Source: Octopus sinensis (lineage: Eukaryota). Taken from it: 64,000 bases of DNA. Where the stretch lies: positions 8,184,001-8,248,000 of the forward strand of contig NC_043023.1 in assembly GCF_006345805.1 (NCBI RefSeq), in the 5' to 3' direction. Made by a program: the position numbers and the translations under genes. The notes below the pieces were generated by a model, which saw nothing but the letters and a program-made list of their open reading frames with translations, made no database searches and was not told the DNA's origin. The first letter of the stretch is position 1. Each line of letters begins with the position of its first letter. Shown piece after piece: positions 37,170 to 63,613 of this stretch.

Positions 37170-37203
<34 letters not shown>

Positions 37204-39119: not shown

Positions 39120-39151
<32 letters not shown>

Positions 39152-42100
39152 TTTCAGTGGCAATTTTGATTGTTATATGAATGTGTGTGTGTGTGTATAT
39201 ATGTGTGTGTGTGTGTGCATGTTACATCCATAACGTTAATATATTTATACATCTATATGTACAGTGATGTAAGGATGTGGACACTAACCAACTCCCCCGT
39301 TTTATGGATCCCTTATTAACATAGCAACATGAAAGGCTTACATTAAGTATATAATCCGTCTTTACTAGACTTGATCTGCTAATTATATTTTCACTCTTGT
39401 TCTAGTCCCCTAAAACATACTATATAGTGAGGGTAAATGAAGATGAGGCTGAAACTATCTGTTTATGACATCTTAATAGATTTATCATGTCCCTAACAAA
39501 TATCCATAGCGTGTTATAGAGGGACCTTACAGAAGGTTGACTACACTAACAAACATCAAATGTACATGATCAGGTTGATCAAGTACCCAGTAGAAGACAG
39601 CAATGACACATCCACCCTAATTTTCATGTACATTTTCAATTTTATATTTTACTTCCACAAAGGATTCAGTGAAACTGGATATTGAGAACAATCGTAAAAG
39701 AACACCCTTACTGGAAGCCATGTATGCAGCCCACCTCGGAATAGTCCATAAACTTATTATACATGGTGCGAACATGAATGCCGTCGACAATGATGGCAAT
39801 AATTGTTTGCACCTTTCCATAATAAAGAAAGGGATGTTTCATTCTGAGGTGGAACGCATTTACATTTTAGATAAGGTAAGTTTTAAAAATTGTTTGTGAA
39901 TGTGTGTGTGTGGTTGGTGTTGTTTTTATATATATATAATGTATTGAGTATTAAAGGAAGTAGTGAGTACTTAGTATGAAAGATTAAGAAAATGAGAGAG
40001 ACTGAAACAACGTGTTAACGATACAAGATACTTTATTCGACTGCCGTTGTTGTACAAGTTAATTGTTTTGGCGGGAAACAAAGTGAAAGTCCTTTTATCA
40101 AGGGAGACAATGGGCGACGTTGATTGTTCATGTTTGTTGTGATGATTATATAACATCTTCCCTTTTTTTTTTTTTTTAAATTTTTTTTATATCATCTGTA
40201 TCTACTGGGAATAATTATTCGTCGTCCACTTTTTGTGGTTTTATTATTTTGTAGTGTTGAATTCTGTAGTTGTGCTGTTTTTGTTTTTTCATGCGTGTTT
40301 GTTGACTTTGGAAATATATTTTCATAATCTAATTCTTCTGTTATGCGAACGTGTTCGTTTGTTTTAAGAATATGTTGTCTATTTCGTTTGACTGTATTTC
40401 CTTCCTCTGTTATTACTAAGTATGAACGAGGTTGCTCTAGTTTTTTAATTATTTTGCCCCTTCTAAACCAATTGTTGTTAAACTTAATTCTAACCGTGTC
40501 GTGTGGTATTAACTCTGGGAGTTCTGTTGTAATGTTTGATTTCTTCTTTTCGTGAGGCCTGATACCAATTTTGTCGTGTAATATGTTTGGGAGATTTGTT
40601 CGCAATGTTCTATTCATTATTTGATTTGCAGGGGATGGTGCACCATTTTGTAATTTAGTCGTGCGTAATGCTAAGAGCGCTAACTGAGGTTCTTCGTCAC
40701 TTTTGATTCTGAAATGAGTTCCGTATATAAACTGATGAAATTTCTTGCATGCGAAAACTATACTGAGAGCTTCGCTCTCTATCGGACAGTAGTTTTGTTC
40801 CGCTTGAGTTGTTGCACGAGATGCAAACGAAACAGGTAGCCATCTTTCGTTGTGTTTCTGCTCAAGTATCGCTCCGAGCCCATGCTTACTAGCATCTGTA
40901 GTTATTTTTATTGGTAGATCTGGATCATAAAATTGTAGCACTGGTTTTCTGGTAATCATTTCTTTTATCTTTTTTATTGCTTCGATTTGTGGTTTGTCGA
41001 ATGACCATAACGTGTCACTCTGTAGAAGCTGGCGCAATGGTGCTGTGACTTCGGAGTAATTAGATAAAAATTTACATAGGTAATTTGTCATACCTAGGAA
41101 TCTTTGTAATTCTTTTTACTTGTTGGCAGTGGCATGTGAATGATTGCTTGTACCTTGGTTGGATCTTGTTTTATCCCTTCGCTGGTTAATATATGCCCAA
41201 GGTACTTGATTTGTGATTCATAGAAGATACACTTTGATTTATTTAACTTTAATCCGTGCTTTCGGATTCGATCGAAAACTTGTTGTAGTCTATTTGTGTG
41301 TTCTTCTAAAGTGTTGGACCAGATTATGATGTCATCCTGTGAATTTCTTGCTCCTTCTATGCCCTCTATTATTTTTGAAATTTCTTTTTGGAAAACTTCA
41401 CTGGCGCTGTGAATTCCAAGGGTAGTCGTGTGAAGCGATACCTTCCAAAAGGTGTGTTGAACGTTAAAAGATGGGAGCTTTCTTCGTCAACTGGAATTTG
41501 CCAGTATCCATTAGATGCATCGAGTTTTGAAAAATATTTAGGGTTATGCATTTGTGCAAAAATGTCCTCTGCTGTAGGGAGTTTGAAATGTTGCCTTTTT
41601 ATGGCTTTGTTTAGATTCTTGGGGTCTAAACAGAGTCGGAGTTTTCCGTTGGCTTTTTCAACGATGACTAGGGAATTTACCCAGTCTGTAGGTTCACTAA
41701 CAGGTTTTATGATATCTAATTCTGTCATTCTTTTTAATTCTTTGTTGAGTTTTTCTTTTATAGAAAAAGGAACCGATCTTGGTGGATGAATTACAGGAGT
41801 TATTTGTGGATCCACTGTGATATGATGTGTTATTGACAAAGTGCCGATTTCTCCGAAACAGTCTTCATATTTTTCTAATATGTCGTTTGTGTTCGACGAA
41901 TTTATTTTTGAAATTCTCTGAATCAGGTTCAGATCTTTAGCTGTCTTTGCATCTATAACTGCGTGCGAGTTTGTTTTTGCAACAATGAATTTTATTTGCT
42001 TTGATAATTCTTTGTATTTAATGACTGCTGTGCATTTTCCTAGCACTTTTATAGCTGTGTTATTATAAGCTGATAATCGAGTTGAAGTTTTTTGCTGTTG

Positions 42101-44240
42101 TGGTTTTGGAATTATATTTCTATATTCTCTGAATGGCAGTACGGTTACGTCTGCTCCTGTATCTATTTTGAATGTTACATTCGAGTTGTTCACTTTTAGT
42201 TCGACCGTCCAAATGTCTTTTGGAGTCTTGAACTTTTCGATTTTGTGCACGCGGGAATTATTTGCAGTGATCATTTCGAGTGCATGTGTATCGTCATCTG
42301 ATTCATCGTCGGTATGTATCTCTACTTTATGTACAAATTTTCTTGATTTGCACATTTTTGCATAGTGTCCTTGTTTCTTGCATTTTTCACATGTCTTGTG
42401 AAATGCTGGGCATTTATTTCTTTTGTGATTATAACCACAATAGTGACAGTTAGTGACGTAGTGTTGACTTGGCGCTTGAAACTTCGCGGGCTTTCTGTCA
42501 CTTCCGCCTTGTTCGTTTTGATGTCTGGATTGCATATGGCAGGTTATTTGAGTTTTGGCGCCTTTTCTGTCGTGTTGACTATATACCCTCGAGATTTCGT
42601 TATCTCTTGTTTCGGATGTGGCATTTAGCATCCTTGATTGGAGTCGTGTTTGCTCTGCACTCTGACCTGCTTGAATTGTTTTTTGTAGGTCTAAATTTGG
42701 TTCTCTCAATAATCTTTCTCTTAATCTCATGTCTCTGATTCCACATATCAGAATATCTTTGGTGAGACTGTCTGTGAGGTTGCCGAATTCGCACTGTTGT
42801 GCCTTTTGGCACAATTCGTACTCATCGAATTTTTGATGTTCCGCTTGTCCACATGTGAAGAATTTGTGTCTTAGGAAAGTTATGTTTTTCCTGGGTTCAC
42901 AATATGCATCGAATTTTTCGATTACTGTCTGAAGGTTCATTTCTTCGTCGGGTGAATCGAAATCCAGTGTGGAATGGATATCTCGGCCTTTAGAACCGAT
43001 GCAAGTTAAAAACATTGAAGTTTTTACTTTGTCTGGCTTCATGTCACTTTCTGTTGCTATCAAAAAGAGATTGAATTCTTTTTTCCACTTTTTCCATGCT
43101 GCGGCTAGATTTTCCTGATTAAAGTCTAGGTCTTTTGGATGCGGTAAATTTTCCATTTCGTCTTTGAAGTATGATTTCAGCTTCTTTTTTCCTTTGGTTT
43201 CTGTATTTTGGGTTCTTTTAGTATTCTGACACCATGTTGTTTTTATATATATATAATGTATTGAGTATTAAAGGAAGTAGTGAGTACTTAGTATGAAAGA
43301 TTAAGAAAATGAGAGAGACTGAAACAACGTGTTAACGATACAAGATACTTTATTCGACTGCCGTTGTTGTACAAGTTAATTGTTTTGGCGGGAAACAAAG
43401 TGAAAGTCCTTTTATCAGGGAGACAATGGGCGACGTTGATTGTTCATGTTTGTTGTGATGATTATATAACAGTTGGCATTAGAAAGGGCATCCAACCACA
43501 GAAACCATGCCAAAACTGGCAATTGGACCCTGAGCTGCTCTGCAGTTGGCCAGCCCTTGCTGAACCATTGAACCCACACCAGCATGGAAAATGGACATTA
43601 AATGATGATGAGGAGGATGAGTAGAAGTGTGAGCTTGTGTGTGTGTGTGTGTGTAAGATAAAGAGAGAGAAATAGAGAAACGGGCAGACATTGCTTGCCA
43701 TGTCTATTCACTCCCATCCACCTCTCTTCCATTAGTATTAAGTAATCCAGTCAATCCAGATAACCCTAGTTATATTATGTAACTAACTATATTCCATCTC
43801 CTTTCACCCTCGAAGGCATGCTCTCTCCACTGTAAAGGAGGTAACCCATCTTGTTGGCTATATAAACACAGCCATCACAGTGTGAAGGAAAGGTGACCAA
43901 TGACAAAGAGGAGACATTCCCAAATAACAATGAAACAGGGAGGAGGAGAGGTCTGTGTGACATGAAAGACGATAACCTTTATAATGCTGGTGCCATGATA
44001 AATGCATCCAGACCATTCTGTGAAGAATTCTTCCCGAAACGACTCTTTATCACACATCTTGCACACAATGTGTATCCACTGGTTTCCTGTAGACATGTCA
44101 TCACAATGTTGAATGTTAGAACACTAGAGAATGGATACAATGAAGGAAGGTCCTTGGTGTGTTTTCCTGTATGTAGGTTGTGTATGTTCAACTACATATT
44201 TATCTGTCTCTCTCTCTCTCTCTTTCTTTCTGTATATATA

Positions 44241-44288
<48 letters not shown>

Positions 44289-46124
44289 AAATGCATCAAC
44301 ATGTATCCATCGGGAGATCTGATGGTATATATTGTCTACTGTTTCAGAATTCAACCAACTCTTTGATTCCCGTATAAATAAAGGTCATTACTGATGTGTG
44401 ACTCTATTTCAAACATTTGATGATCATATGTAAATTGTAGTAATGTCTACTTTGGTGAGAAGAAGCCACTCTTGCAGTCAGCTACCCACCCAACTGGAAT
44501 TGTCTAACAGTTTGAGCAGTTTATTAACTATAATGTGTTGGTGTGCTGCCTCAACTGTGACACTAATTCTTACTTCCTTTACTTCACCTTCATTATCCAA
44601 AGAGGTTTCTTTATTAATTATGGAAACGTTGTTATTTTTGGATATGTCTGTGTGGTGTTGCTTTTGTTGTTGTGTCTGTTCTAAGTATTCTCAGTTCTCA
44701 TGTAACTTGTTTGCTGTCATGTTGTTGTGTTATATTTATATATACAATACTCCTCCATATTTCTTGTGTGATGGCCATTTATGGATTCACCAAGCTAGTT
44801 GAATAGATAGGTTGTTGTTAGTTTGTTGTGTTCTAATATTTGTGATGTTTGTTCCATTATATTCCATATATTTGACTTGATGCTATGATTTGGTTTTAAA
44901 TTGTTTTTTATTGAATATCTTGTGATATTTGTGATTGGCAAATGATTATTTACGCATTAATTACCAATAAACTTGATGTTAATCAGTAATGTTTGTTCTG
45001 TTTAATATAATGACCATATATATAAAATATGTCATAATGTTGAGAATAGACTAAAAACAAATGAAAATGGGAAATGGATTCAATTAGAGATGATGTCGGA
45101 ACTTAATATTGTGCAATCAGTTTAAGCGCTGGAGATACAAACTATTTGTATACGTAGTTGAACTGTTGTGTAATTTGGGTATCTACGAAGTATATTTGTG
45201 AAATATTGTAATCATCATTTTATACTTTGTCATTTGTAGTGCTGTGCTAAGCTTGGGTTGCCGATCGAAAAGAGGCTCTCTGGTGTAGGAGTCGCTGGCT
45301 ATCTAGCCCACCAGGGGGCCAACTTGTACAGGAAAAATAATAAGAATGTAGCTCCATTGGACCTCATTGGGGATGCAGATTTGAAAGAAAAATTTAAAGA
45401 ATTATTCCCCCCACCACAGTAAGTATTCGTTGGCAGTGACAGTTTATTTTCTATTTTGTATATAATCATGTTTATGTTTGTTTAATTTTAATTCTACCAA
45501 TACATTATACTGCCATAGTGTCTTGATCAAAGGCCACACAACAATAGTATGAAGAACAATAAACAAAATGCAGTTGTTATGTGATCCAATGAAGAGCACT
45601 GTTTTGGTTGGTAGTTGTACCTCACTGTCTACCACCACCCATCTACCTTTCTTAGTTCCCTATTTTAAAGATTTGTGACCAATAAGAAAATGTAGAACTA
45701 AACAGTGAAGTGAATGAACAGATTTTGAAGTTGTTACATAAAAACAAATGGAATTTATCTGTCTACCAACATGTTCTCTCTCTTCTCTGTTCCAATCAGT
45801 TCATTATTATGAAAGGTTTCGTAAGAAAATAAACTACACACCCAAACAGCGTGTGTATATATATCATCAACATCATTATCATCATTGCTTAACGTCCATT
45901 TCCATCCTGGCATGAATTGGATGGTTTGAAAGGGAGCCCGCCAGAAGTCTACACCAAACTTCTGTCTGTTTTGGCATGCCCAGCAGAGTGGACTGAGTAA
46001 CACCAGCGCAGGCAAGGCCAGTTTTGGAATGGTTTTTACAGCTGGATGTCCTTCCAAATGCCAGCCATTTTACAGTGTGGACTGGATGCTTTTTATGTGG
46101 CACCAGCACTGGCAGGGTCACCAA

Positions 46125-46219
<95 letters not shown>

Positions 46220-49200
46220 TATTTCTGTTAATATTGCTAGAACACTGACACACATCTTCACAGAATAAAATTGCCAGGAAACATAAATCGTTCTGGTAAC
46301 ACCTATACCATTCTTAGTCTTTTAGGCTTCTTGGTCACATTAGACTCCTGTATTTCATAAGTTTTAGCTGTTACTTTGCCATATATTTGTTAGCTGCTGA
46401 TGAACAAGACACATTATTCTCTGTGAGAATATGCATAACTTTCTTTGTCTGTTGAAATTCAGATATTGTCTTTAGATGTTGATTTCTGAACTGTATAAAT
46501 ATAGCTCTGTTTTATCCGATAGACAAGCATTGGTTGGACTTATTTATTAGCAAATAATCTTTTATGCAAATATTGTAATAACATAATGCATACAGAGCTG
46601 AGGTGTACTACAACTTACTGGGAAAGGGTAAAAGAGGGGATGGAAAGCAGTGCTTAGTCAAGTAAAGAAATACCGTTATGAAAGCTAGGAGTACATGCAC
46701 GATACATAGAATAAAACACAAAAAACAGAAAGGCTAACAGTAAAAGAGGCATAAAAAGGTACATCAGGAGTGTAGTGGTCTATGTAGCTAAATAGTTGAA
46801 TGATCTCCCTTGCAAGAAAGCATATAGAGTAACCTCCCTTTACAAAGTTTCTAGCAGCATCTGTGTCATCAGATGTGATTCTTAATTATTCAAGTATCTT
46901 AGCATTTCTCTTGGTAGTTTCTAGAATATCTAGCATTCCATTCATAAAAACAGCTTGCTAACCTGCTCTTTGCTTCTTAGTCGATTAGACTTAGAGCCAT
47001 TCACGTCATTGCTATGTCCGTCTGTTTCTCTACGCCACATGGCTGAAAACCACCACTTGGCTATTATTTCTATATTTCCTATCTCTGAACTTTCTTGTAT
47101 AGATTATTTCATTCAACTAGATGCTACATATTAATTCTGTGTATCGTCATCGACCAGTAAATAAAATATATTTTTCCGTAGTAAATATATAGGTCTTGAA
47201 TTTATTCTTCATCTCTTTATGAACTCTTGTAAATAACATACACGCAGCCACATCAACACCTTGTACTGGCTATATATCCTCGGTAAGAAAAGAATATTTT
47301 GAAGGATGCCGTATCCTGACAGCTAACAGCTGACTCAGGTGGTTTGTTGTGTGTTTAAATAATTCTGAGTGAGATAAAGTATTTCACACTGTTTTTTATT
47401 TTAATTTTATAGGAATGTCTGCTGCTGGCTGAGATTTTCAATTCAAAAATGTTGCCAAAGTTGTTGTTGGCAAGATTATGTATAAACCTAAGGGATTATA
47501 CCAGATTAGCTGCTAGACTTCAAAACTTTAGTGTGCTAATACCCAGAGAAACAATACATTCAGTATATGGTGACTAACAGAGAGTATTTGCCTGGTTTGG
47601 AGATCAGATTGAAGCAAAGGTATATAGCATCTAATAAGATGTCAATACCCAGAGAAGCAATATATTCAAGATATGGTAACTAAGAGAGAGCATTTGCCTT
47701 GTTGTTCTTCTCTGAATAGATATTCTGGACAGGATGGGGATTCCAGATTGGAAATGTAAACTGTAAGTGTAGACGTATGATAGCCAGGCATAATTTTAAA
47801 CTGATAACTTGACAAATTGACGGGCAGAGGTTTTACTGAGCAATACTTTGATATTTCTGATGATTTTTAGAAATGTGGTTCATGCATTACACATCATTGT
47901 TGACATTAATGTCACGGTCAAGTTCACCTGCAGACTTTTGAAGTTTGCTGTTCTGGAGAGAGTTGGTAAATTTTGGAATTTTCATTCCAAAGTGTATAGT
48001 GGTGCACCATTCTATGGCCAGCTTGAGTTTGCAATCAGCAGTGCATTGCTGCATTGTATCCAGGTCAGATTGAAGAAAGGATCTATAGCAGATAGTTGGC
48101 ATGTATTTAGCTGATACATAGAAGGAGCAAGAGAAAACCAAGAGTAGTTCCTTGTAGGTCTTCTGTGTTGGGTGCAGAATGTTAGCTTAGTGTTGTGACT
48201 CTGTCTTTTCAACTGAGAATGTAAGTATTTTAAGCAGTTATATAATTTAGTCCTCGCACCCATTCCAGACAGTTGTGCCGTAATTGATCACTGTGGCATG
48301 GAATTAAAGACTTTGGTGAAGTTGATAGAGATAATATCCACCCATGAACCACCATCTGTGAAGAAATTCAATGCAGCAACAGTTAGGGATAAATCGAAAT
48401 GGTTGGAGTTTGAATAAGCTTATGAGGGTTCCAGATGTTCCAAAATGTCTTCCTGTAGATCCATTAATTCTGTGAGACTGACTGGATGGTAATCAACAGG
48501 GGATGTCTGGTCACTCCCTTTTTGAACGGGGGAGAATACTGGCAACTTTCCATTAAACTGGGCTAAGTTGAATTAGAAGAGGACAAAAAGCTGGTGCAGT
48601 AGAAAAAGGGTGCACCCTTTGAGAAGCAGATGAATAACACCACCAAGACAAGAGGAAGCATAATTGCACATATGCTTCAATTAGCATTGCGATATTGCAG
48701 AATTCAACAGGTTTTATGGAATTTGATCTCAGTAGCAGTGAAAACGGTACATTTGTCACTCCTTTAATATGGCAGGGTACCATGTTGCTCCTTCTTCTTT
48801 AATCACGTCCAGCATCTCATCGATATTTCCTGGCAGTCTCTCACATATTCAGGCTTCTAAAATGTTTCTATGGCACCGACACTTATTCATGAATTAAGGA
48901 TGGATGTGCTGAAGGTTAGTCTTGACATCTCCAGAATTGTAAAGTCGAAGCCAGTCAGAGAACTATACCTCAGTACAGTCGGAGTTCCAGGAAAACAAAG
49001 CAGTTTGGAAGTTATGGTGGCTTTTCTTTCTATCCATTAGAAATATTTTTGCAAGATTGGTGTATGATCAGAGTCACCTAAGGGTTCATCACTATTGAGG
49101 CTGATAATTTCAGGAGCAGTGGTAAATAGCAGATCGAAAGTGTTGTTAACTCTTATGGGAGAGAGACTGCTTGGGATTAGTTTGAATCTAACATTAAATG

Positions 49201-52200
49201 AAGGAAATCTGTTGTGGCCAGTGGAAGATTTCCTAATCAATATTGGGTAATTGAAATCACAAGTATGAGAACATAGGTAACCATTTTCATAGATGCAGCT
49301 CTAAAAAGTTTTGTGGATGGTAAATGTTGATGTGCTTTTATGTCGCAGAAAAATTCCTCTTGTGACTGGTTTAAATCTTCACAAGCAATTTCTGAAAAGC
49401 TTGAGCAAGCATAGACCATCGCACCACCTCCAAGGTAATGAAAGAGGTCTTTGTGAAAGAAAATGTAGCCAGCCATGCTAAAAACACCATTGCACAGTAA
49501 AGAATGTGTCCAGGTTTAACAAATGAGATTGGAATCAGTACTTTTAACTTAGGAATCAAAAATAGTGAACTTTATTGCATAAACTGTGGGTATTTTTAAA
49601 CAATAATTTGTATCTCGATTTAAATCTGTCATGGTTCATGGAAGAGGATATCCTCAGACCAGTTTGCATCCCTTTTTCATCTGGTATTGAGTCATGATTT
49701 AAGGGATCTACAATATGTAACTTCAGGTGTGTATCAGGTGGTGAATGACGAAGAGCTCAATTTATCACACCTGTCCTTATAAGAAGCTAAACAGTATGCA
49801 CATAGCTCAGTAGAAGGTAAATCTAACTCGTTTGGGTTTTGATCCAATCAACTGAGGCAAATAAAATTGTTTTGGAGGAACACATCTGAAGTTGATAAGA
49901 TGTAGATCAATGAACATGGACTCACCTATAACAAGGGGCAGGTTTGTATGCAGGGCAAACCTAGACTGAAGTGTTTTGCTAAAGAACTTTACACATCGCC
50001 TTGTTCAGGAATTGAAGCCGCAATTTTACTGTGTGAGTCCAAAAGCCTAACAACTTAGCCATGCACCTCACTCTGGTCAGTCTGGTGTTTCATAATATTC
50101 TGTACTGTAAACATAAAACAAACATGTAATATTTGTTAGAAATGAATGTTATAGGTGGGATGTGTTTTATGTTTTTTCCACAGATGTATGCTTTGTGAAG
50201 TGAATAAAGCCAGCATGGAGTTACAACCCTGTGCACATACTGTTTTATGTGAAGATTGTAGCAAAATTCAACTTAAAACATGTATAGAAAGCAAAAGAAG
50301 GAGAGTTGGTAAGAATATGATTTGATGATCTGTCTGTTTGTCACATGACATTATGGAATGGAATAATGTTGTATCAACCCAGATCTGTCATAATCTGACA
50401 GACGTATGATAAAAAATGTCCCAGGTGTCTTTTCTCTTTGATAGTATATCCATGACTACACCCACTGAATATTGTCTTTATCCAAGTAGGAAACCTGTCC
50501 CACATCAAAAGAGTACTGTCTGCAACATAAGACTAATACGTTTTACTGAAATATAAATGAAATATCAATAAATCTCCAAGGTCCCATCAGTAAACATCAA
50601 CTTTTTATATTCAGTTGTCAGCTTTTATATGAGGTTAATGATTTATAAGTACCTTGGGAAACTGATAATTAAGGACAACAGTACTTCCTACAACATCACA
50701 GTCAGCTTTGTAATGTAAGAATTTCAATGACAAAATCTCAACTGAGAGTTTAAGGATCTGACTCTTAGCGAGTCTTATATATTCTTGAGAATGAATTCTA
50801 GTGTCCCATTTCAGATATAACTCCTTTGCAATAATGTGTAGATAAACAGTTTTAAGTTAAGGAGGTTTTATACAAATGTAATGTTTCAGGATACCTGTTA
50901 TCACTTTCTGCTCCACCTGTGTAGAACTAATCATTGCTCACCTGGAAAAAGAAAAAGCTGCTTATTAAGGAGGATGAATGACATTGAAATATCTTCAGAT
51001 CTTTCCTGAATCAGGTGGTATTCTGGTGAAGTGTGATGTGGGCAGTTAAAATTAAAGATTACCAACAGTAACATATAAAAATGAGGGCTGGGGTATGTTT
51101 ATCCTTCCTGAAGCAATGTGTCATGCCTTTGTGGCCAGATCTTTGAAGACCAGATTGGTTGACACTGGAATTTAGCAGAAAATGAGAAGAATATTGGTTA
51201 GTGAAGGTTCGAGATGAGAGGACAATGGCATGTCATATGACCAGCACAGACATAACAAAGGAAAGACAAAATTAAGAGAAAAAGAGTGTTATGAAGGGAT
51301 AACTAAGTGAGAGAATTTCAGAATCCTTAGATTAGTATATAGGATGTCTTAAGAGAAAGATGAGATTTAGAAAGGTTTGCCTATTTTGTTGTGGTTCTAA
51401 ATATTGAACTATTATATAGTAACAGCTTAGAAAGTGTTGACTGAAAGCATAGTGGTCACCAATTGACTATTGATGATATGAATGCCTTACAAAAATGGAA
51501 TATAGATTATTAAAAGAGACAAAGAAATTTTACTATGAAGTATAAAACTTTGAAATGCTTATTTCAGTGTGTCCAAAGTGTAAAGAAAAAGCAGTCAAGA
51601 CGGTTGTAGAATCTGTTGGTGAGTATAAAATATCTGTAATTGATTTCTATAAATTTTACCTTCACCTGAGATATATTATTTGTGTGAATGACTGAGAACA
51701 GGTTCCATTCTTAATTTCCAATTCTTATTTCAGAATGTCCAAAGTGTAAAGAAAAAGTAGAATCTTTTGGTGAGTATAAAATAACTGTAATTGATTTCTA
51801 TAAATTTTACCTTCACCTGAAATATATTATTTGTGTGAATGTCTGAGTACAGGTTCCATTCTTAATTTCCAATTCTTATTTCAGTGTGTCCAAAGTCTGA
51901 AGAAAAAGGAGTCCAGACGGTTGCAGAATCTGTTGGTGAGTATAGAATAACTGTAATTGATTTCTATAAATTTTACCTTCACCTGAGATATATTATTTGT
52001 GTGAATGACTGAGAACATGTTCCATTCTTAATTTCCAATTCTTATTTCAGTGTGTCCAAAGTCTGAAGAAAAAGCAGTCAAGACGGTTGCAGAATCTGTT
52101 GGTGAGTATAAAATAACTGTAATTGATTTCTATAAATTTTACCTTCACCTGAGATATATTATTTGTGTGAATGACTGAGAACAGGTTCCATTGTTACATT

Positions 52201-55200
52201 TCTTTCGAATGGTTAGCGATAAAAGTAATTCTATTCGTTACCTACAAATGCAAGAATATCCAATAAAGGGGTTTTATAGAAATATGGAAACATGAGACAC
52301 AGGAAAAATGTCTTTCACGATGAGGCCAAAATACAAAAGATAAAATATAAACCCTGAAGCTGTTCTCTCCCCATAATGAGATACATTCACTTTTCTTTCA
52401 TCTCATTGTTGTCTCTCTCTCCTTCCCTGTTTCTTCCTTCATCTCTCTCTCTCTCTCTCTATGCATCTACATGTAGCAGCCTCTGTACTTTCCAGTCGTG
52501 TAACAACATGAATTGTATTTAAAATATTGATATTACAGAAATTTAATAAAATGTCCAGCAGTGTTGGCCCTGTTGCTAAAATGGTTAAATTAGAAAAAAA
52601 AAACAAACAATAGAGTTAATATTGTCTTTTGAATGAAGGAAGAAAAACATTTTGTTGTTTAATGGTAAACAGGTGAGTTAATGACAGTGTTTGTTTGTTG
52701 TACATTTTCAATAAGTTTACTGATTATTGTTGTTGATGTTCTTGTTGAACAAGATGGTTAAGTTGAAAGCTTACAAGTGTGATCACCCTGTCTTTTTTTT
52801 CACTGTTAGTAAATCTATCATTACATCCATTAAACGATGTCTTTGTCCAAGTAAGAAGCTTTGGTCTGCTGCTGAGACAATTGCTCTCTCTCTCTCTCTC
52901 TCTCTCCTTAAGATGGACACTGGTTGCAAGATACAATACAATCGATGTTATTGTCCTCATCATTTACAGTCTGCTCTCCTTGCTTCCATGTAATGGATGG
53001 GTAATCACTGTCCAAGTCAGTTCTTATTCAGAGTTACTGTCCCCCTTGACTGCTTGAGAAACACATCTCCCTTAAACATTCCACCTTTTCTATGGTGGGA
53101 TGCCCCCCCCCAACACCAACCACTTCATAAAGAGTCCTGAGTACATTTTAATGTGGCACAAGCACTAGAAAGATTTTCATGTGTCCAACATTGAAACTGG
53201 AATAGCTGTAGGTTGCACACTATCAGTCACTTAGTTTGTGCTTGTTATGGGGATCGGCAGATTTATGAGAAGAAATTACTCAGGCGAAATCATCTAAGAA
53301 AACATTCATGGATGACATAAAAATGCTAACAAGAGATCCAAAGTATATGCAATCAGTCCAAGATAGATTGGATGGACTAATTAATTGCTCAAGAATGCTG
53401 TTTGAAACAAATAATGAATGCATTCTGACATTTGTGAAAGGTCAACAGAAGCAAGTGAAGTTCAAAATAGCAGGAGAAATGATGCGAAAGGTTAAAGAGT
53501 AACTTGTAAAACGTTTTGGACTGTGGTAGATGATCTCATTGTCCGATAAGAGTAGAGGCATTGATGTCATTGCAGAAACCGAGGATGGGCAATAAGCATT
53601 TGCCAAGTCAAAACTTCTGGGCAAAAACAAGATTTGGTGCTTGAAGTTTGATCTATATCACCATCTTGATAATATATTCTTAAATATCACTTCTTTTGTA
53701 CCATTTCAGATATTTTTCCTTTGCGATAATCTGTGTATGAACATTTGCATGTTGTTAAAGATGTTTTGTGCAAGTATACAGTGTTTTAGGATACTTGCTA
53801 TCACTTTCTGTTTCACCTGTGTAGAACTAATCATTGCTCATCAGGAAAGAAAAGCATTTCATTAAGGAGTCCTTAAATATTTCCTGAATCAGATGAAATT
53901 CTGGTGAACTGTGAGTTGCATTGTTTAAAATTAAAGATTAAAAGCAGCAACGTTTGACAAAGATAACAGGTGTGACATGAGTTTGTGTCAAGGTCATTGA
54001 TGACCAGCTTGGTTGACATCAGAATTAAGCAAAAGAAGAGGGGAATGTTGATTAGTGAAGTCCAGTGGTGAGGGGACAATGCCATGTCATAGGTTTAGAA
54101 TGGATACAAGAGATACATGTGATCATTAAATAAGATGATTGCAACGTTGTTAGATTAAGTAGGATGTCTTAATAGAAAAAGGAGGCTTAGGAAGGTCAGT
54201 CTATTTTATTATGGGCCTAAATATTGAGCCATTATATAGGACCACAGTAGAAAGTATAAAACTATCAACCAAACCTATAGTGGTCAGCAGTTGTCCATTG
54301 ATGATAGGAATGTCTTACAATAATAAAATATAAACCATTAACAGAGATCAGGAAATTGTGCTATGAAGTGTAAAATTTGGAAATATTTATTTCAGATTCT
54401 GTAATGGTAGAGGAGATTCATCTTCATAGGGTGTCCCAAAAGTTGGCAGGTAAATGGATGGAACTTGGTGAGTATAAAACACCGAATTTCTATAAATTTT
54501 GCTTTCAGCTAAACTTTTGTTTGTTTGAATGACTGAGAACCGATTCCATTCCTAATTTCCAATTGAAAGTTTAGCTATAAAGTAAAGCTATCACTGAAAT
54601 TTCATAAAATATCTATGGACGTCAGCACGGTTGTAAAATGTATAAATTAGAAGGTCCAGTAGAGTTAATATTATCGTTTGTAAAAGGGGACTCAAAAATA
54701 TTGTTGTTTAAGAGTAAACAGGTGAATTAATGACAATGTTTTTGCTTGTTTACACTTTTAGTAAGTTTACTAGTAGAGTGTTGTTGTTGATGTTTATTTT
54801 GGCAGATATCTGCCTTAATCTGGCAGAATTAAGGGGAAAGGGTTCCAGATGTGCCATCGCTCTTTCTCTTGGGTGAAGAGGACCACATTATCAAATGTAA
54901 CCTTTTTAAAATGAGAGTGTGCATTGTGTGGGACATGTTGTCATCTCTCCCCTGGCCAGTCTGTTTTTCTATATTTATTGTAATTCTTTAGTCCCAGGTC
55001 AACATATATTTCCTGTCTCTATAGAAGACAGGCCCCATTGTTGATTGTGTTCATGGCTGGATTGAACTCAGCATTGTAAGTTAATGAAACACTCATTTAT
55101 ATTAGAAAAAAAAGAATCTCAACAGAAAATTCAAACTCAACTTGATCTTGTTTCTCAATTGAAATCATTTCACTCTCCTTTACATTACAAATGTCACGTG

Positions 55201-58200
55201 GAAAGGCATGAACATCACAATATCCCATTTCCCTTTCTCCGACAGTTTAACACAACATAAAATATCATTTATACAATGCTCCTATTATTTACAGCAATGT
55301 CTTCTACCTCCCTATGGTACCTATATACATCTAGATAGAATGAAGCATAGAGAAATGTCTTTACCAGGTACATTGAGCGGTGCTGGGGATTAGATTTGAA
55401 CCTTTGATCCCTGACTCAAGGGATCATGACAATATCCCCTGAGTCAGCTGATAGAAACCATCATCTTCATCATCATTTGACGTCTGTTTTCCATGCTGGC
55501 ATGGGTTGGACTGTTTGACTGAGGTCTGGAGAGCCAGTGGCTGCACCAGGCTCCAATCTGATCTGGCAGAGTTTCTACAGCTGGATGCCCTTCCTAATGC
55601 CAGCCACTCCGAGAGTGTAGTGGCTGCTTTTTATGTGTCACCAGTACAGGAGCCAGTCAGGTGGACCTAGCATCAGTCATGTTCGGATGGCCTTTTTACG
55701 TGCCACCAACACAAGGAGTCAGTCAGATGACACTGGCATCGACTACATTTGGATGATGCCTTTTATGTGCCACCAGAACGGGGGCTAGTCATGGGGCACT
55801 GGCCACAGCTGCAATTTTGGTTTTACTTGACTCAACAGGTCTTCTCAAGCATATCATGTCACCCGATGCATTAAGGATACTCTTAAATGGGCCGGACATG
55901 CAACACTGGCATCGGCCATGGCTGCGATCTCACTTTAGTTGCTGGGTCTTCTCAATCACAGCATATTTCCAAAGGTCTCGGTCTCCTGCCATTGCCTCTG
56001 TGAGGCCCAATGTTCAAAGGCCATGCTTCACCATCTCATTCCATGTCTTCCTGGGTCTACCTCTTCCACAGCTTCGTTCTACAGTTAGGGAGTGGCACTT
56101 CCTCACACAGATGTCCTAATCCATACATAACACGTGACCATACCAGCACAGTCGTCTCTCTTGCACACCACATTTGATGCTTCTTATGTCCAACTTTCCT
56201 CTCAGGGTGTTTACACTGTGTCGTGTATGCACACAGACATTCCACATCCAGCGGATCATACTACCTTCATTTCTGTCAAGTCTATGCATGTCCTCAGCAG
56301 TCATGGCCCATGTTTCACTACCATGTAGCATGGCAGTTCACACTCAGAAATGATTTATCTAAATTAAGAAAGGACATCATCTACAACATTGCCAGCTTGC
56401 TATACCTCTGGGTGTCATACAAAATATACCAGTCATATACTGGGATAAAATGAATCCACTAACACCAGGTCCATTATCATCATCACCTTACATCCATTTT
56501 TCTAAGTTTGTAATGGTCAGACGACTTCTCCCAGAGTTGTTGTGGTCCTTTGTCCAGTTTGATCGCTTGTTTCTTTCCACTTGAATTCCAGGCACTTCTT
56601 TACCCAGATTTCATCTGCCATGTCCCTTCTATATCTATACCATTATCTTTTTTCTTGTACACTATCACAGATTCTTCTGAGATCCAGTTATTTGGCTCCA
56701 AGATTTCAACACATTAACATTACACTTCTAGAGATGTCTGCTCACCTCATTTCCTGGCAGTTTCCATTGTATCTTTCACATTCTATGTAACATTGCATGA
56801 GGTGTATTTGTAAAGTGCAATCTCTCCCTCATATGGAGACAGAATCCCTTAGTTGCCAGTAGACATAACAACTCCCTGTACATTTTTCATCTCATTTTCC
56901 TTCTAACTACTGTGCTTTCAGAATAGTTTCCTCTACTTCTAATTCTGTCCTTTAGGTAACAGAAACTATCAACTATGTCTTTCATACTTGTTCCTATGAA
57001 CTATTCCTGTACACATACAAAGTCCTTCCTCAGCCCTAACCTTAACCTGCCCTCCCTGTAAACTTGCTTGTTTGTGAATGCAGTGATTCTATCAGGACCC
57101 GAGTGTTGTAGGTGTATGGTGTAGATGTTGGTAAAACTCTTCTCATTGCTTTATTTACTCTAGGGCCTCTCCTGTATTAGATTCTTTGAAATTGTGGCCT
57201 TGATCCAGTGAAAGAAGTTCTTGTTATAAGTCATGAATCCAAAAACCTTAAGCCAGTGCCCTCTATAATATGTGATATTTACCTAACAGTATTATATTTT
57301 TACTTTGGGGTGGTTGAAATCATTCAGGTACACAATCCCCACTTTTGAGATATTTCTGAATGTTGATAATTTTTAAATATTTATTAATCATAGGTGGAAA
57401 GACATCGCAAATGACTATTTCAGGCATTGATCACAGGACGTTATCAAACGACTGAGATTGTATTCCTCCAAAGAGTCTCTGGAGTAACGTTACTCAACAA
57501 GGTGTGCAGGCTGGAGATTTGGGGTCTCTCCAGGTCAAGTGACTGCTTCTCTGCATTGAGAATTCACAGCTCCAGTAATCCTGGCATGTGATTAAAATAT
57601 CACAGGAAAGAACCACAAGAGGGATGAAGGAGGTGCCTGAAGACTCTTCCCCTACAATTCTCCTATGAATAGAGGGCAGAGAAAATGGACGGATGGATGA
57701 AATTATCTGTTGGTGGTCTTTGTCAATTCTTTAGGCTCTCATACACTGCTACCCACACAAACACTTCTCCTGCCAGTTGTTCACCAGACATTTTCTCATG
57801 TGTAATTTTCAATTCTTTAAAATATTCTTCTCCTTCTCCAGCCTTTATTTCAAATTGTTTGATATTTTTGTCAACATCTTTAGAAATAGATAACAATGTC
57901 TTCTAATTTCCCTGTTTCTTAAGTATTTCTCATTCTTCTATTCACATAATTTCTTTGTCCTAATTAATACAGGTTTTATATTATCGTTAATGCTGTTGCA
58001 ATTATTTCTTATTTCTTTTGCAGGAAGGGAATTAGGAATTCGACAAAATGACCTGGAAATCATCAGGCATGACTATCCTCAAAGCGTTAGGGAACAAGGC
58101 TTCCAGATGCTGTTCAAATGGCATCAAAGTACTGATCCAGAGAAACGTACACTTCGAATATTAAAAGCAGCTCTTAAGGAAACTGAATGTTATGATGCAC

Positions 58201-58229
58201 TCAAATGTTTATCATCAGAATTCAATTGA
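23580..58229 (+). CDS. Spliced gene (14 predicted coding exons, ~555 aa): Mind-bomb-like ankyrin repeats + RING + death domain; putative E3 ligase/adaptor
   Basis: Exons 23580-23663, 27391-27542, 30607-30763, 31230-31486, 36607-36642, 39663-39875, 45240-45418, 50184-50308, 51568-51618, 51734-51769, 51885-51935, 52051-52101, 54396-54467, 58024-58229; all GT-AG; phases chain correctly except exon 5 (1 nt short). Confidence 0.85.
23816..24440 (-). mobile_element. Degenerate LINE RT fragment (CR1/Jockey-like) in intron 1
   Basis: [14 protein letters not shown]...SINSGIP resembles the xLDIxKAFDxVW...SGVPQG RT motifs. Confidence 0.55.
26130..26470 (-). mobile_element. 3' end of an RTE-like LINE with two C2H2 fingers
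   Basis: [21 protein letters not shown]...[22 protein letters not shown] then 3'UTR; related 3'UTR piece at ~26660-26990. Confidence 0.6.
27391..27542 (+). CDS. Exon 2: ankyrin repeats ([10 protein letters not shown]...GANID...NTALHYAVK)
   Basis: ttcttctcttcag acceptor, GTAAGG donor, phase 0 to 2. Confidence 0.92.
28601..29085. mobile_element. Non-autonomous TIR element (~485 bp)
   Basis: ~85-bp imperfect TIRs (ggttaaaatcttgtgtttgg...gtgcaataggtgtgaaacaacatgtagtaaacgaata vs reverse complement at 29010-29085); flanked by TA; internal TIR-like copy at 28921-28948. Confidence 0.75.
29707..30430. mobile_element. Foldback-type element, ~720-bp imperfect palindrome
   Basis: Arms align from aggcatacctccacaac... 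to ...tgtgtaggtttgcct, with nested subrepeats; centre ~30070. Confidence 0.8.
30607..30763 (+). CDS. Exon 3: ankyrin repeats ([31 protein letters not shown])
   Basis: ttcctttcag acceptor, GTCAGC donor, phase 2 to 0. Confidence 0.9.
31230..31486 (+). CDS. Exon 4: ankyrin repeats incl. a recent 102-bp internal duplication
   Basis: [22 protein letters not shown] twice, [10 protein letters not shown]; donor GTAAGT; phase 0 to 2. Confidence 0.93.
31950..32147. repeat. Perfect 29-bp inverted repeat with 140-bp spacer
   Basis: ttggaaaatattcagataaaatttataag (31950-78) / cttataaattttatctgaatattttccaa (32119-47). Confidence 0.9.
32292..33715 (-). mobile_element. 5'-truncated RTE/BovB-like LINE (second family)
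   Basis: 379-aa ORF: [35 protein letters not shown]-terminal CSTC...HSHSRKC; upstream [12 protein letters not shown] in another frame. Confidence 0.92.
33799..34631 (+). mobile_element. RTE LINE 3'UTR with partial tandem duplication and expanded internal repeat
   Basis: Same subfamily as 4924-5470; 33799-33957 repeats the start of the segment resumed at ~34030; (ATG)n tail. Confidence 0.9.
35421..35556 (+). ncRNA. Type-I hammerhead ribozyme motif with long stem-II loop (intron 4, sense)
   Basis: atct-CTGAAGA(35429-35)-agcc...ggct-GAAA(35536-39)-CAGCTG-TA-agat; all core bases intact. Confidence 0.8.
36607..36642 (+). CDS. Exon 5: 36-nt exon (KRHYDVV...), apparently frameshifted
   Basis: Strong pyrimidine tract + CAG, donor GTTAGT; continues the ankyrin helix, but 37 nt are needed to reach exon 6 in frame. 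Confidence 0.65.
37587..37666 (+). ncRNA. Type-I hammerhead ribozyme motif (intron 5, sense)
   Basis: gtgg-CTGAAGA(37593-99)-aggcc...ggccc-GAAA(37651-54)-CATATG-TA-ccgc; A-C mismatch at the base of stem II. Confidence 0.7.
37860..38960 (+). mobile_element. Degenerate RTE LINE, endonuclease/linker region
   Basis: [14 protein letters not shown] (APE GDFNxxVG motif), MWWW, REKCV...DGSLAVSD; many stops. Confidence 0.65.
39663..39875 (+). CDS. Exon 6: ankyrin repeats (RTPLLEA...[19 protein letters not shown])
   Basis: AG 39661-62, donor GTAAGT 39876, phase 0 to 0. Confidence 0.92.
40192..41091 (-). CDS. Gypsy RT end/RNase H fused in frame to integrase C-terminal tail
   Basis: [30 protein letters not shown] then directly [13 protein letters not shown]...SPA...RTLRT; integrase core absent. 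Confidence 0.85.
   Translation of the reverse strand: MTNYLCKFLSNYSEVTAPLRQLLQSDTLWSFDKPQIEAIKKIKEMITRKPVLQFYDPDLPIKITTDASKHGLGAILEQKHNERWLPVSFASRATTQAEQNYCPIESEALSIVFACKKFHQFIYGTHFRIKSDEEPQLALLALRTTKLQNGAPSPANQIMNRTLRTNLPNILHDKIGIRPHEKKKSNITTELPELIPHDTVRIKFNNNWFRRGKIIKKLEQPRSYLVITEEGNTVKRNRQHILKTNEHVRITEELDYENIFPKSTNTHEKTKTAQLQNSTLQNNKTTKSGRRIIIPSRYR
41369..43156 (-). CDS. Gypsy gag-protease-RT (N-part), frameshifted near 41410
   Basis: Zinc knuckles (CHYCGYNH...[15 protein letters not shown]), protease [41 protein letters not shown]; shifted frame continues [10 protein letters not shown]...SQDDIII. Confidence 0.9.
   Translation of the reverse strand: MENLPHPKDLDFNQENLAAAWKKWKKEFNLFLIATESDMKPDKVKTSMFLTCIGSKGRDIHSTLDFDSPDEEMNLQTVIEKFDAYCEPRKNITFLRHKFFTCGQAEHQKFDEYELCQKAQQCEFGNLTDSLTKDILICGIRDMRLRERLLREPNLDLQKTIQAGQSAEQTRLQSRMLNATSETRDNEISRVYSQHDRKGAKTQITCHMQSRHQNEQGGSDRKPAKFQAPSQHYVTNCHYCGYNHKRNKCPAFHKTCEKCKKQGHYAKMCKSRKFVHKVEIHTDDESDDDTHALEMITANNSRVHKIEKFKTPKDIWTVELKVNNSNVTFKIDTGADVTVLPFREYRNIIPKPQQQKTSTRLSAYNNTAIKVLGKCTAVIKYKELSKQIKFIVAKTNSHAVIDAKTAKDLNLIQRISKINSSNTNDILEKYEDCFGEIGTLSITHHITVDPQITPVIHPPRSVPFSIKEKLNKELKRMTELDIIKPVSEPTDWVNSLVIVEKANGKLRLCLDPKNLNKAIKRQHFKLPTAEDIFAQMHNPKYFSKLDASNGYWQIPVDEESSHLLTFNTPFGRYRFTRLPLEFTAPVKFSKKKFQK
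43472..43622 (+). mobile_element. RTE-type 3' tail remnant (target of the Gypsy insertion)
   Basis: gttggcattagaaagggcatcc...ccagcatggaaaatggacattaaatgatgatga. Confidence 0.7.
45240..45418 (+). CDS. Exon 7: last ankyrin-like repeat and linker ([25 protein letters not shown]...LFPPP)
   Basis: ttgtag acceptor, GTAAGT donor, phase 0 to 2; resembles the ACFLAxxGAD...SPLDL segment before the RINGs of Mind bomb proteins. Confidence 0.88.
45865..46120 (-). mobile_element. RTE-type 3' tail fragment between TA tracts
   Basis: catcattatcatcattgcttaacgtccattt...gctggatgtccttcc. Confidence 0.7.
47750..49700 (-). mobile_element. Highly degenerate CR1/L2-like LINE (endonuclease to RT)
   Basis: NTFDLLFT...LGDSDHTPI (APE end), LQSDLD...C...K...HFG (RT thumb), many stops. 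Confidence 0.55.
50184..50308 (+). CDS. Exon 8: RING finger CMLC-x11-CAH-x3-CEDC-x7-CIES
   Basis: ttttttccacag acceptor, GTAAGA donor, phase 2 to 1; C3HC4 spacing with last Cys replaced by Ser. Confidence 0.9.
51568..51618 (+). CDS. Microexon A (51 nt): [17 protein letters not shown]
   Basis: ttatttcag / GTGAGT, phase 1-1, no stop. Confidence 0.7.
51734..51769 (+). CDS. Microexon B (36 nt): [12 protein letters not shown]
   Basis: ttatttcag / GTGAGT, phase 1-1, in-frame 15-nt deletion relative to A. Confidence 0.68.
51885..51935 (+). CDS. Microexon C (51 nt): [17 protein letters not shown]
   Basis: ttatttcag / GTGAGT, phase 1-1. Confidence 0.68.
52051..52101 (+). CDS. Microexon D (51 nt): [17 protein letters not shown]
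   Basis: ttatttcag / GTGAGT, phase 1-1. Confidence 0.68.
53240..53520 (+). mobile_element. Degenerate non-LTR RT remnant (FMDD motif)
   Basis: FMDDIKMLT...RMLFETN resembles RT motif 5; family unresolved. Confidence 0.4.
54396..54467 (+). CDS. Exon 13: death domain N-terminus ([24 protein letters not shown])
   Basis: ttatttcag / GTGAGT, phase 1-1; joins to give WMELGRELGI. Confidence 0.85.
55456..56342 (-). mobile_element. 5'-truncated RTE LINE
   Basis: [11 protein letters not shown]...RLCWYGHV, 3'UTR and catcat tail. Confidence 0.88.
58024..58229 (+). CDS. Terminal exon: death domain ([33 protein letters not shown]...[10 protein letters not shown])
   Basis: ttcttttgcag acceptor, TGA at 58227-29; death-domain pattern W..LGR.LG...I..I..........ML..W. 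Confidence 0.9.
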
Positions 58230-58407
58230 ATTTCTTTGTAAATTGTTGCTGTTGCTTAGTCGCAAGTCTGTCTTTACCACAGACCTATTATCAAATGCCT
58301 TCCATCCAGGACCATCCTGTCTTTTTCATAAGTATAGAGAACGTAGAACCACATTGTTTAATGTGTCCTTCTTTAAGGTGATAAGTTATGAATGGAGTAG
58401 GATTTGG

Positions 58408-59386
58408 GGATCTTTACCTTTCGACCGGCAGATTTAGAAAATAATTTCTTGTAACTAAACACTTTCAAACTTCGTATTCTGGTAGAATGTGTTGTATAAA
58501 ACATCTTTTACTCTTAGCGTTTTGAGAAAAGTTTATATTTACAAAGTTATTTCATGTTAAATTTGTCGTATTTCGGTAATTTCAACCAATCAATGGCGTG
58601 TATTCATCTGAATAAAATTACTGCCGTTGTTTGTCAACAACTTCTGGCAGTGTATATTTCGTTTGTCACTGTTATTTATGACATATTTCATCTCAGTTAT
58701 GTTTGTATAAAAAACGAGTCTATCTGAAACATGTTTACTTCATGGCACCACCATAATTGTTCGTGCATTTCTACTGGTTTTAGTTATGTTTTTTCCTGTT
58801 TTTCAGCTTTTTTAACCCTAACCCTAACACCTTAGCCCTAACACTAAAACCCTAACCCTAACCCTAAAACCTTAGCCCTGACACTAAAACCCTTGCCCTA
58901 ACACTAAAACCTTAACTCTAACCCTAAAACCCTAACCCTAACCCTAAAACCTTAGCCCTGACACTAAAACCCTAGCCCTAACACTAAAACCTTAACTCTA
59001 ACCCTAAAACCCTAACCCTAACACCTTAAAGCTAAAACCAGTACAAACGCACGAACGATGTCATAAATAACAACAACAAACGAAATATATACCACCAGTT
59101 GTTGTTGACAAACATCATCATCATCATCATCATCCTTTAACGTCCGCTTTGCATGCTAGCATGGGTTAGCAGTAATTTTATTCAGCTGAATACACATCAT
59201 TGATTGGTTGAAATTACTGAAATACGACAAATTTAACACGAAATAACTTTGTAAATATAAACTTTTCTCAAAAACACTAAGAGTAAAAGATGTTTTATAC
59301 GACACATTCTACCAGAATACGAAGTTTGAAAGTGTTTAGTTCCAAAAAATTATTTTCTAAATCTGCCGGTCAAAAGGTAAAGATCC
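58408..59386. mobile_element. Non-autonomous DNA transposon with ~300-bp TIRs, 8-bp TSD and telomere-like core
   Basis: GGATCTTTACC...GGTAAAGATCC; TSD GGATTTGG at 58400-07 and 59387-94; ~55-bp RTE tail inserted at 59113-59168. Confidence 0.92.
58813..59030. repeat. Degenerate (CCCTAA)n telomere-like array
   Basis: taaccctaaccctaa mixed with aaccttagccctgacactaa variants. Confidence 0.9.
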
Positions 59387-62754: not shown

Positions 62755-63083
62755 ATATATATATATAATAATAATATTAGGGAGTATAACTCCAAACTTA
62801 CAGGGGAAAATTCAATTTAGTATTAAATCAAATTTTACAATATAAATATATAATATCTATAAATTAGAGATAAAACCGCTATTATGCAATTCAAACAATG
62901 ATAGACATAAACCAAATCATAAATCAAAAATAAAATATATATTTTTAAAACATATAACTAGATCATAAAAAGTATAAAAATGAATAATCAATATTATTAC
63001 TAAGTCATGGGGATGTAAACATACTAACATTGGTTGTCAAGCACTTGAGGGAGACAAGCATAGAAACACACACACACATAGAT

Positions 63084-63140
63084 ATTGCTTCTCTTATGGC
63101 TAAGATCAAGGTCTAATATCTACTCTTAGCAGTTTAATAT
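63084..63140 (+). pseudogene. U2: U2 snRNA 5' fragment (pseudogene)
   Basis: attgcttctc----ttatggctaagatcaaggtctaatatctactcttagcagtttaatat vs U2 nt 1-60 ATCGCTTCTCGGCCTTTTGGCTAAGATCAAGTGTAGTATCTGTTCTTATCAGTTTAATAT; branch-point pairing region mutated, 3' two-thirds absent. Confidence 0.82.
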
Positions 63141-63167
63141 ATATATGTATGTATGTATATATATATG

Positions 63168-63203
<36 letters not shown>

Positions 63204-63204
<1 letters not shown>

Positions 63205-63613
63205 CTTGCGAAGACCTGTTGGGGCAAGTGAAATCGGAATCGAAATTGAACCAATCCTATGACTGGCACCCGGCAGGTGCCAGGACCCCTGGACTGGTGG
63301 TACGTAAAAAGCACTATCCGAATCATGGCCGATGCCAGTGCTGCCTCGACTGGATCCTGTGCCAGTGGCACGTAAAATGCACCAATCCGACCGTGGCCAT
63401 TGCCAGCCTCACCTGGCACCTGTGCCAGTGGCACATAAAAAGCACCCACTACACTCACAGAGTGGTTGGCGTTAGGAAGGGCATCCAGCTGTAGAAACAC
63501 TGCCAGATAAGACTGGGCCTGGTGCAGCCTTCTGGCTTCCCAGATCCCCGGTCGAACCGTCCAACCCATGCTAGCATGGAGAACCGACGTTAAACGATGA
63601 TGATGATGATGAT
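63204..63613 (+). mobile_element. RTE LINE 3'UTR fragment flanked by (TA)n
   Basis: Same 3'UTR and tail as other copies. Confidence 0.9.

Follow-up and report, generated by a model that had tools for sequence, protein, structure and literature searches.

A tandem microexon array as a probable splice-variable linker in an octopus ankyrin–death-domain protein with a truncated RING

In a 64,000-nucleotide (nt) stretch of the Octopus sinensis genome (contig NC_043023.1, positions 8,184,001 to 8,248,000 of the forward strand; hereafter the window, by which positions are numbered), four tandem microexons lie between the exon for a RING domain and the exons for a death domain (DD) of a gene that also encodes ankyrin repeats (ANK). 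We consider it probable that this array is a splice-variable linker in an ANK–DD protein that is itself probably dead as a ubiquitin ligase (E3). The array arose by tandem exon duplication, in which an approximately 1-kb segment with the first DD exon, which encodes helix α1, would have been duplicated upstream of itself, the exon copy would have shrunk to 51 nt, and a 166-base-pair (bp) exon-plus-intron unit would then have been amplified to four copies. Because the strong acceptor, the GTGAGT donor, and the 1-1 phase are all preserved from unit to unit, each would act as an independent cassette exon, so that transcripts may carry different subsets of the units. Zero to four Lys/Glu-rich segments of 12–17 residues would in this way be inserted between the RING and the DD, forming a variable-length, charged, and probably flexible or helical spacer behind a RING from which an 18-bp deletion at a microhomology has removed the last two zinc ligands.

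The region from 50184 to 58229, together with exons upstream of it, is the 3′ half of one annotated O. sinensis ankyrin–RING–death-domain gene. A composite of 256 residues spliced from the window exons is found letter for letter inside the O. sinensis RefSeq proteins XP_029651866.1, XP_036370279.1, and XP_036370284.1, which are isoforms X11, X7, and X12 of a protein named "E3 ubiquitin-protein ligase MIB2-like." The gene lies on the 21.3-Mb chromosome CM016885.1, isoforms X7, X11, X12, X14, and X15 are annotated at the locus, and the O. vulgaris orthologue, L005, is 98.8% identical over 14.6 kb. The gene is a member of a large octopus expansion of ankyrin-repeat/RING (zf-C3HC4_3)/death-domain proteins, a fast-evolving family that is tandemly clustered on one chromosome and has many CAI9743xxx–CAI9744xxx entries on OX597842.1. 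RefSeq already lists the gene with its isoforms; in the literature, no paper on the octopus family or on the microexon array was found.

The array is laid out as follows:

51554–52202, + strand: whole tandem array of four ~166-bp units, each with acceptor tract, exon, and 115-nt intron (Tandem Repeats Finder, unit blastn)
51568–51618, + strand: microexon A, 51 nt, encoding CPKC; present in RefSeq isoforms
51734–51769, + strand: microexon B, 36 nt through a 15-nt in-frame deletion, encoding CPKC; skipped in isoform X14 (P0206)
51885–51935, + strand: microexon C, 51 nt, encoding CPKS; skipped in isoform X15 (P0202)
52051–52101, + strand: microexon D, 51 nt, encoding CPKS (extracted unit, spliced composite)

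Extraction of the units bore out the anatomy described in a first-pass annotation of the window: all four have the ttatttcAG acceptor, the GTGAGT donor, 115-nt introns, and phase 1-1, the exons measure 51, 36, 51, and 51 nt, and A and B encode CPKC where C and D encode CPKS. At 51608–52202, Tandem Repeats Finder detects 3.7 copies of a 166-bp unit (88% matches, score 861), and the units are 84–96% identical to each other. Each has what defines a cassette exon, namely canonical AG/GT borders, a length that is a multiple of three, and symmetrical phase, and the claim that any subset can be included in frame also held, every subset spliced between the RING exon and the DD exons being open through to the stop. 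The O. vulgaris orthologue has the same four units, two substitutions apart. RNA folding of the conserved 115-nt intron revealed no special structure (z-score +0.46), and an Rfam scan of 45000–59000 returned no matches. The 3′ part of the unit introns (51688–51726 and 52005–52040) and the intron after DD exon 1 (54529–54552) translate to MTENRFHS, which is similar, though not significantly so (E = 0.5–1.8), to MEENHFHS in an exon type that paralogues have, "SLKMEEN"; this stretch may be a remnant of an older exon within the repeat unit.

By alignment, the units are identified as shortened copies of the exon for DD helix α1, amplified as a 166-bp exon-plus-intron unit. The segments concerned are these:

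50777–51723, + strand: upstream copy of a ~1-kb segmental duplication, whose partner is 53672–54564 (intron, DD exon 1, intron); 67% over 983 nt
54396–54467, + strand: DD exon 1 (helix α1), 72 nt, phase 1-1; parent-type exon for the microexons, within which the Pfam Death match begins
58024–58229, + strand: DD exon 2, ending in the stop TGA (spliced composite, Pfam Death)

The stretch 51340–51723, composed of the upstream intron, microexon A, and intron, aligns to 54160–54564, composed of the upstream intron, DD exon 1, and intron, with 71% identity over 414 nt (E = 2e-51), and in that alignment the acceptor ttatttcAG and the donor GTGAGTATAAAA are in register. The homology of the duplication extends over ~950 nt (50777–51723 against 53672–54564) and picks up again past the array (52520–52740 against 54578–54794). 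Moreover, the unit peptide xPK[FSC]EEKAVQTVAES matches the start of DD exon 1 in paralogues, TPKLEEKCLQDVAKLLG..., and exons of the parent type occur without an array in the O. bimaculoides relative L004. Homology of the units both to each other and to DD exon 1 plus its flanks is the mark of tandem exon duplication, and the alignment in register of unit and flanks indicates that the units descend from DD exon 1 and not from the RING. A derivation of the microexon from the 3′ end of the RING exon, with which A and B share CPKCK, was rejected on the same grounds, since the whole unit and its flanks align to DD exon 1; A and B came to share CPKCK with the segment deleted from the RING, described below, by chance, through point changes at two places (TTT or TCT to TGT, GAA to AAA). 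The DD itself is recognized by Pfam Death (PF00531) across exons 54396–54467 and 58024–58229 at 46.6 bits against a cut-off of 22.6, over profile positions 3–83 of 86, and has an AlphaFold confidence of 64–90 in the model of a paralogue.

Evidence on isoforms comes from RefSeq (Gnomon) gene models rather than read counts, and at this annotation level it supports the units as real, freely combinable cassette exons. At the window locus the models carry ABCD, ACD (X14), or ABD (X15). For a copy of the gene that is 97.6% identical and sits on an unplaced contig of 50 kb, 22 isoforms are annotated, X1–X22, 21 of which decode exactly as subsets of A–D (X4 is not included); together these make up all 16 subsets, among them forms in which C or D stands alone, C and D stand together, or all four units are skipped. 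The splice-variable inclusion proposed in the first-pass annotation thus stands at the level of models, which skip B or C here and run through 16 subsets in the sister copy. Some of the sister-copy isoforms also use an alternative acceptor that lies 15 nt into DD exon 1: this 3′ splice site (AG at 54409–54410, exon start at 54411 instead of 54396) removes DSVMV, joining ...ESV to EEIHLH, and is annotated in sister-copy isoforms X2, X5, X8, X15, X16, and X21.

Copy number across paralogues, a comparison that had been proposed, ranges from 0 to 6 units in varying combinations. One O. sinensis paralogue has two usable units, with isoforms that carry the two together or either one alone (P0023, P0024, and P0005), and a neighboring paralogue has four (CPKF, CPRC, CPRC, and CPKC) in at least eight combinations of 1–4 of the 4 units (P0006–P0011, P0025, and P0026); six units stand in a row in O. 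vulgaris P0034 and five in O. sinensis P0032. Because the cassettes are freely combinable and their number varies among paralogues, the further suggestion that the number included tunes the length of the RING-to-DD linker is plausible.

Ahead of the array, the RING is incomplete:

50184–50308, + strand: RING (zf-C3HC4_3) exon, 125 nt, phase 2 to 1, with ligands 1–6 only; acceptor ccacAG, donor GTAAGA, Pfam match to profile positions 4–39 of 49
50274–50278, + strand: scar of the 18-bp deletion, a single kept TAAAA; the paralogue L002 has TAAAAGATGCCCCAAGTG-TAAAA, encoding RCPKCK (blastn)

The exon translates as first described, with AGC present at 50290–50292. The view that TGC is expected there, so that only the last Cys would be lost, is refuted by L002 and by O. 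vulgaris P0012 and O. bimaculoides P0018, which have the closest intact RINGs in the subfamily. In P0018 the RING ends ...LKRCPKCRTCIKSKSKF (in a longer stretch, ...IKLKRCPKCRTCIKSKSKF), and tblastn places a 6-residue gap in the window RING relative to P0012. L002 is a close paralogue on the same chromosome, and its RING exon, 92% identical to that of the window by blastn, has an additional 18 nt directly before the second TAAAA. From these comparisons the lesion is read as an in-frame 18-bp deletion between 5-nt direct repeats, TAAAA, that removed RCPKCK and with it zinc ligands 7 and 8. The TCIES (or CIES) that follows is the ancestral post-RING tail, CP.C[KR]TCI[EK]S; its Ser is ancestral, and is neither a C-to-S change nor the sequencing error for CIEC that had been allowed for. 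The RING exon of L005 is identical to that of the window, deletion included, and the deletion is consequently older than the split between O. sinensis and O. vulgaris.

The zf-C3HC4_3 family (PF13920) requires eight ligands, C-C-C-H-C-C-C-C, of which the window supplies the first six. Fragments from the window score 28.2–30.6 bits over profile positions 4–39 of 49, against a Pfam gathering cut-off of 27, the full-length orthologue P0201 scores 26.3 bits, under that cut-off, and intact paralogues reach 33–41 bits over positions 3–48. With both last zinc ligands lost, the protein is most likely ligase-dead in every isoform and would act, if at all, as an ANK–DD adaptor; the earlier idea that it is ligase-dead only with C/D or with no unit is not supported. 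Other members of the subfamily have RING lesions of their own: L002 (protein P0004) carries a +1 frameshift, the read-out of P0022 is frameshifted, and the RING of P0073 has an N-terminal deletion. L002 (O. sinensis CM016885.1, 18927288–18964037) is a partial paralogous duplicate, 92–97% identical to window 29688–32311 and 46952–50891 and without window 32311–46952 and everything past 50891; its RING exon keeps the 18 nt for RCPKCK, but a +1 C insertion leads to SKTST and a stop. L002/P0004 and P0022 were considered as orthologues showing decay, and this was rejected, both being paralogues and L005 the true orthologue.

The CPKC of A and B is the basis of a different reading, put forward in the first-pass annotation, in which A (or B) places a CxxC 17 residues past ligand 6 and restores the second RING zinc site, so that splicing would switch E3 activity. 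HMMER can indeed align the CPKC of A with the final two Cys of zf-C3HC4_3, over profile positions 4–46 of 49 and just above the cut-off. In addition, the five residues CPKCK that the RING lost are found in A and B as well, the CPKC of both units is kept in O. vulgaris and in the near-copy, and A is present in every isoform annotated for the chromosomal locus. However, to reach the CPKC of A the RING profile must span a 17-residue insertion, and the score drops to 27.8 bits with A from 30.6 without it. The units derive from DD exon 1, and where A and B have their second Cys, relatives have L, F, S, or M; the unit motifs of the family include SPKF, CPKF, CPKS, CPKC, CPRC, GPKL, RPKS, NRTF, and more, so that neither Cys is a family feature, and most family members carry such units without Cys. 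In P0025, P0034, and P0032, intact RINGs are followed by three, four, and one unit of the CxxC type, respectively, which argues that these units did not arise to compensate for the deletion. The sister-copy isoforms that have only C, only D, C+D, or no unit speak against the rescue as well. In an AlphaFold2 model of the window RING, A, and DD, the predicted local distance difference test (pLDDT) score of the RING is 34–40 and A is a low-confidence helix, and an intact-RING control, P0005, with the same shallow alignment gives 37–39. RING pLDDT is below 40 in both, giving the rescue no structural support, and because the intact control is equally poor the run says nothing on zinc-site rebuilding. 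Given that both ligands are lost, that the units come from DD exon 1, and that the profile score is lower with A, the splice-switchable E3 has no positive support, and we regard it as highly improbable.

The CxxC units might instead pair with each other as an independent Cys4 zinc knuckle or ribbon, A and B forming CxxC-x13-CxxC and P0034 having four such units in a row, with splicing deciding on the mini-domain. A C-type unit lineage, xCP[KR]C[KRE]EK.VKTV.ES., is common to several paralogues and three species, and the array has faint Pfam zinc-ribbon matches (Zn_ribbon_3, DZR, and Zn_ribbon_6) that are not significant (E = 0.1–0.7). Those matches are at chance level, however, AlphaFold renders the units as low-confidence helix or coil from a shallow alignment, a single C-type unit is frequent among annotated isoforms, and most arrays of the family are without any Cys; to such pairing we attach very little probability. 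More broadly, it is improbable that the CxxC units (A, B, and up to four in P0034) are splice-selectable zinc-ligand donors, whether by completing the second site of the deleted RING or by pairing as a Cys4 knuckle. If they were, alternative splicing would decide on a metal site, and possibly on E3 activity, in an ANK–DD signalling protein.

A further explanation, unlikely but far from negligible, is that this member of the family is decaying or drifting neutrally and that its isoform diversity is splicing noise, in which identical strong sites pair at random without functional consequence. The recurrent RING lesions of the subfamily, from the 18-bp deletion here to the frameshifts of L002/P0004 and P0022 and the N-terminal deletion of P0073, are consistent with it, as are frame-breaking units in paralogous arrays (unit 4 of L001, 49 nt; units 2 and 3 of L003, 50 and 49 nt), and the annotation of all 16 subsets in the sister copy is what random site pairing predicts. 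Furthermore, the units vary no less in their exon parts than in their intron parts, and the exon changes are mostly non-synonymous: in a set of nine intact units drawn from three loci, the exons have 10 variable columns of 51, 7 of them non-synonymous, against 9 of 88 intron columns, a difference that is not significant (Fisher p = 0.13), and pairwise comparison of all 13 units gives an exon variability of 12% against 4.4% for introns. What stands against drift is that the full open reading frame (ORF), all splice sites, and the four units are intact in O. sinensis, its near-copy, and O. vulgaris, although at 0.67% divergence this is weak evidence, and that many paralogues, as well as the more distant O. 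bimaculoides (P0036 and P0039), still have arrays of 17-residue units between RING and DD, which suggests a retained module. The divergence figure is that of non-exonic sequence between O. sinensis and L005; the array introns differ at 0 of 446 positions. The frame-breaking units, located at 10512–10560 in L001 and at 16712–16761 and 16872–16920 in L003, are skipped by gene models. L003, from the older O. sinensis assembly, has many 1-nt gaps in homopolymer runs, and some of the frame-breaking units may be assembly errors.

Several further points weigh against the splice-variable linker that we favor. The unit peptides show no sign of purifying selection among the nine intact units of the three loci, 7 of their 10 variable exon columns being non-synonymous, and the 3 differences in 592 nt between the O. 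sinensis and O. vulgaris exons are all non-synonymous, a divergence too small to judge constraint. Spliced reads can be mis-mapped among units this similar, and the models may have pieced full-length combinations together from partial evidence. That E3 activity is lost is something that we infer from the missing ligands. Finally, A and B keep their CPKC in each of the three copies examined, which would fit a role for these Cys residues.

Tandem exon duplication has given rise to alternatively spliced cassette arrays in the PEVK exons of titin and the variable exons of CD44. The octopus array resembles these in having short in-frame exons produced by exon-plus-intron tandem duplication, with symmetrical phase and strong splice sites, and in that the number of units varies between transcripts and changes linker length. 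It differs from them in that the parent exon encodes DD helix α1 and in that the units are only 36–51 nt long, with introns of 115 nt. In addition, inclusion is apparently fully combinatorial, whereas it is mutually exclusive in Dscam or, elsewhere, blockwise.

The protein shares with the Mind bomb ligases MIB1 and MIB2 a run of ankyrin repeats followed by a C-terminal zf-C3HC4_3 RING, which in intact octopus paralogues has the CPxC[KR]xxI ending. In contrast to Mind bomb, it has one RING, not two or three, and a C-terminal DD, which Mind bomb is without, and the RING of this copy is without ligands 7 and 8. A Pfam scan of the full-length orthologue, 556 residues long, found only Ank, one truncated RING, and Death, and no MIB/HERC2, ZZ, or REP. 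Its RefSeq name notwithstanding, a protein with no MIB/HERC2 or ZZ, only a single RING, and a DD is not a Mind bomb ligase. The protein also resembles ANK-plus-DD adaptors and the lineage-specific DD expansions of invertebrates, in its ankyrin repeats with a C-terminal DD and in belonging to a large family that evolves fast and lies in tandem clusters. The octopus protein differs from such adaptors in its RING between ANK and DD and in the microexon spacer array, and no ZU5 or UPA domains were seen in it.

Upstream of the RING exon, the window holds further coding exons of the same gene:

27370–27540, + strand: ankyrin-repeat coding exon, ends approximate (tblastn with P0012, P0028, and P0201)
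30605–30766, + strand: ankyrin-repeat coding exon, ends approximate (tblastn, 100% to the O. vulgaris orthologue P0201)
31230–31487, + strand: ankyrin-repeat coding exon (tblastn, 100% to P0201)
39657–39875, + strand: exon with the last ankyrin repeat and linker, ends approximate (tblastn)
45240–45418, + strand: exon ending ...KELFPPP(Q), with donor GTAAGT at 45419–45424

The exon at 39657–39875 is the start of RefSeq isoforms X7, X11, X12, X14, and X15, and P0204, P0208, and P0210 start with MLVQDSVKLD; the apparent stop TAA after the exon at 45240–45418 belongs to the donor GTAAGT. About 42 nt downstream of the ankyrin exon donor, a young long terminal repeat (LTR) retrotransposon (gag-protease-reverse transcriptase, RNase H/integrase) occupies 39918–43471, with minus-strand ORFs at 40192–41091 and 41369–43156 and LTRs of ~238 bp at 39918–40155 and 43235–43471 that are 99–100% identical. 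It is absent at the orthologous O. vulgaris site, where window positions 39917 and 43472 correspond to L005 53250 and 53246.

Elsewhere in the window, which is AT-rich and has many microsatellites, a 107-bp satellite runs from 398 to 4615 in ~40 copies with 92% matches, and L005 has several blocks of the same satellite (10.4–19.9 kb). Degenerate telomere-like repeats (CCCTAA/TTAGGG variants in 20-, 40-, and 80-bp higher-order units) lie at 58812–59039, ~600 bp past the stop of the gene. Dispersed repeats of 62–66-bp units (GTGCCACCGACACAGGTGCCAG...) form short tandem blocks on both strands at 5084–5225, 17472–17728, 34201–34449, 55625–55791, and 62400–63600; this family, also found in L001, L002, and L005, probably resembles a short interspersed nuclear element. 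Two ORF fragments, at 56116–56331 (minus strand) and 61795–62199 (plus strand), look like the reverse-transcriptase tails of non-LTR retrotransposons.

The array is a real, tidy, and modest further example of tandem exon duplication, and the present evidence reveals no new mode of E3-ligase switching. If the annotated isoforms are real transcripts, it would be a clean natural case in which exon-plus-intron duplication gives combinatorial protein diversity, with 16 isoforms from four exons of 36–51 nt, and in which a fragment of a folded domain, DD helix 1, is reused as a linker. Furthermore, the RING has been damaged repeatedly within one subfamily, which points to ANK–DD functions in these octopus proteins that have no need for ligase activity.

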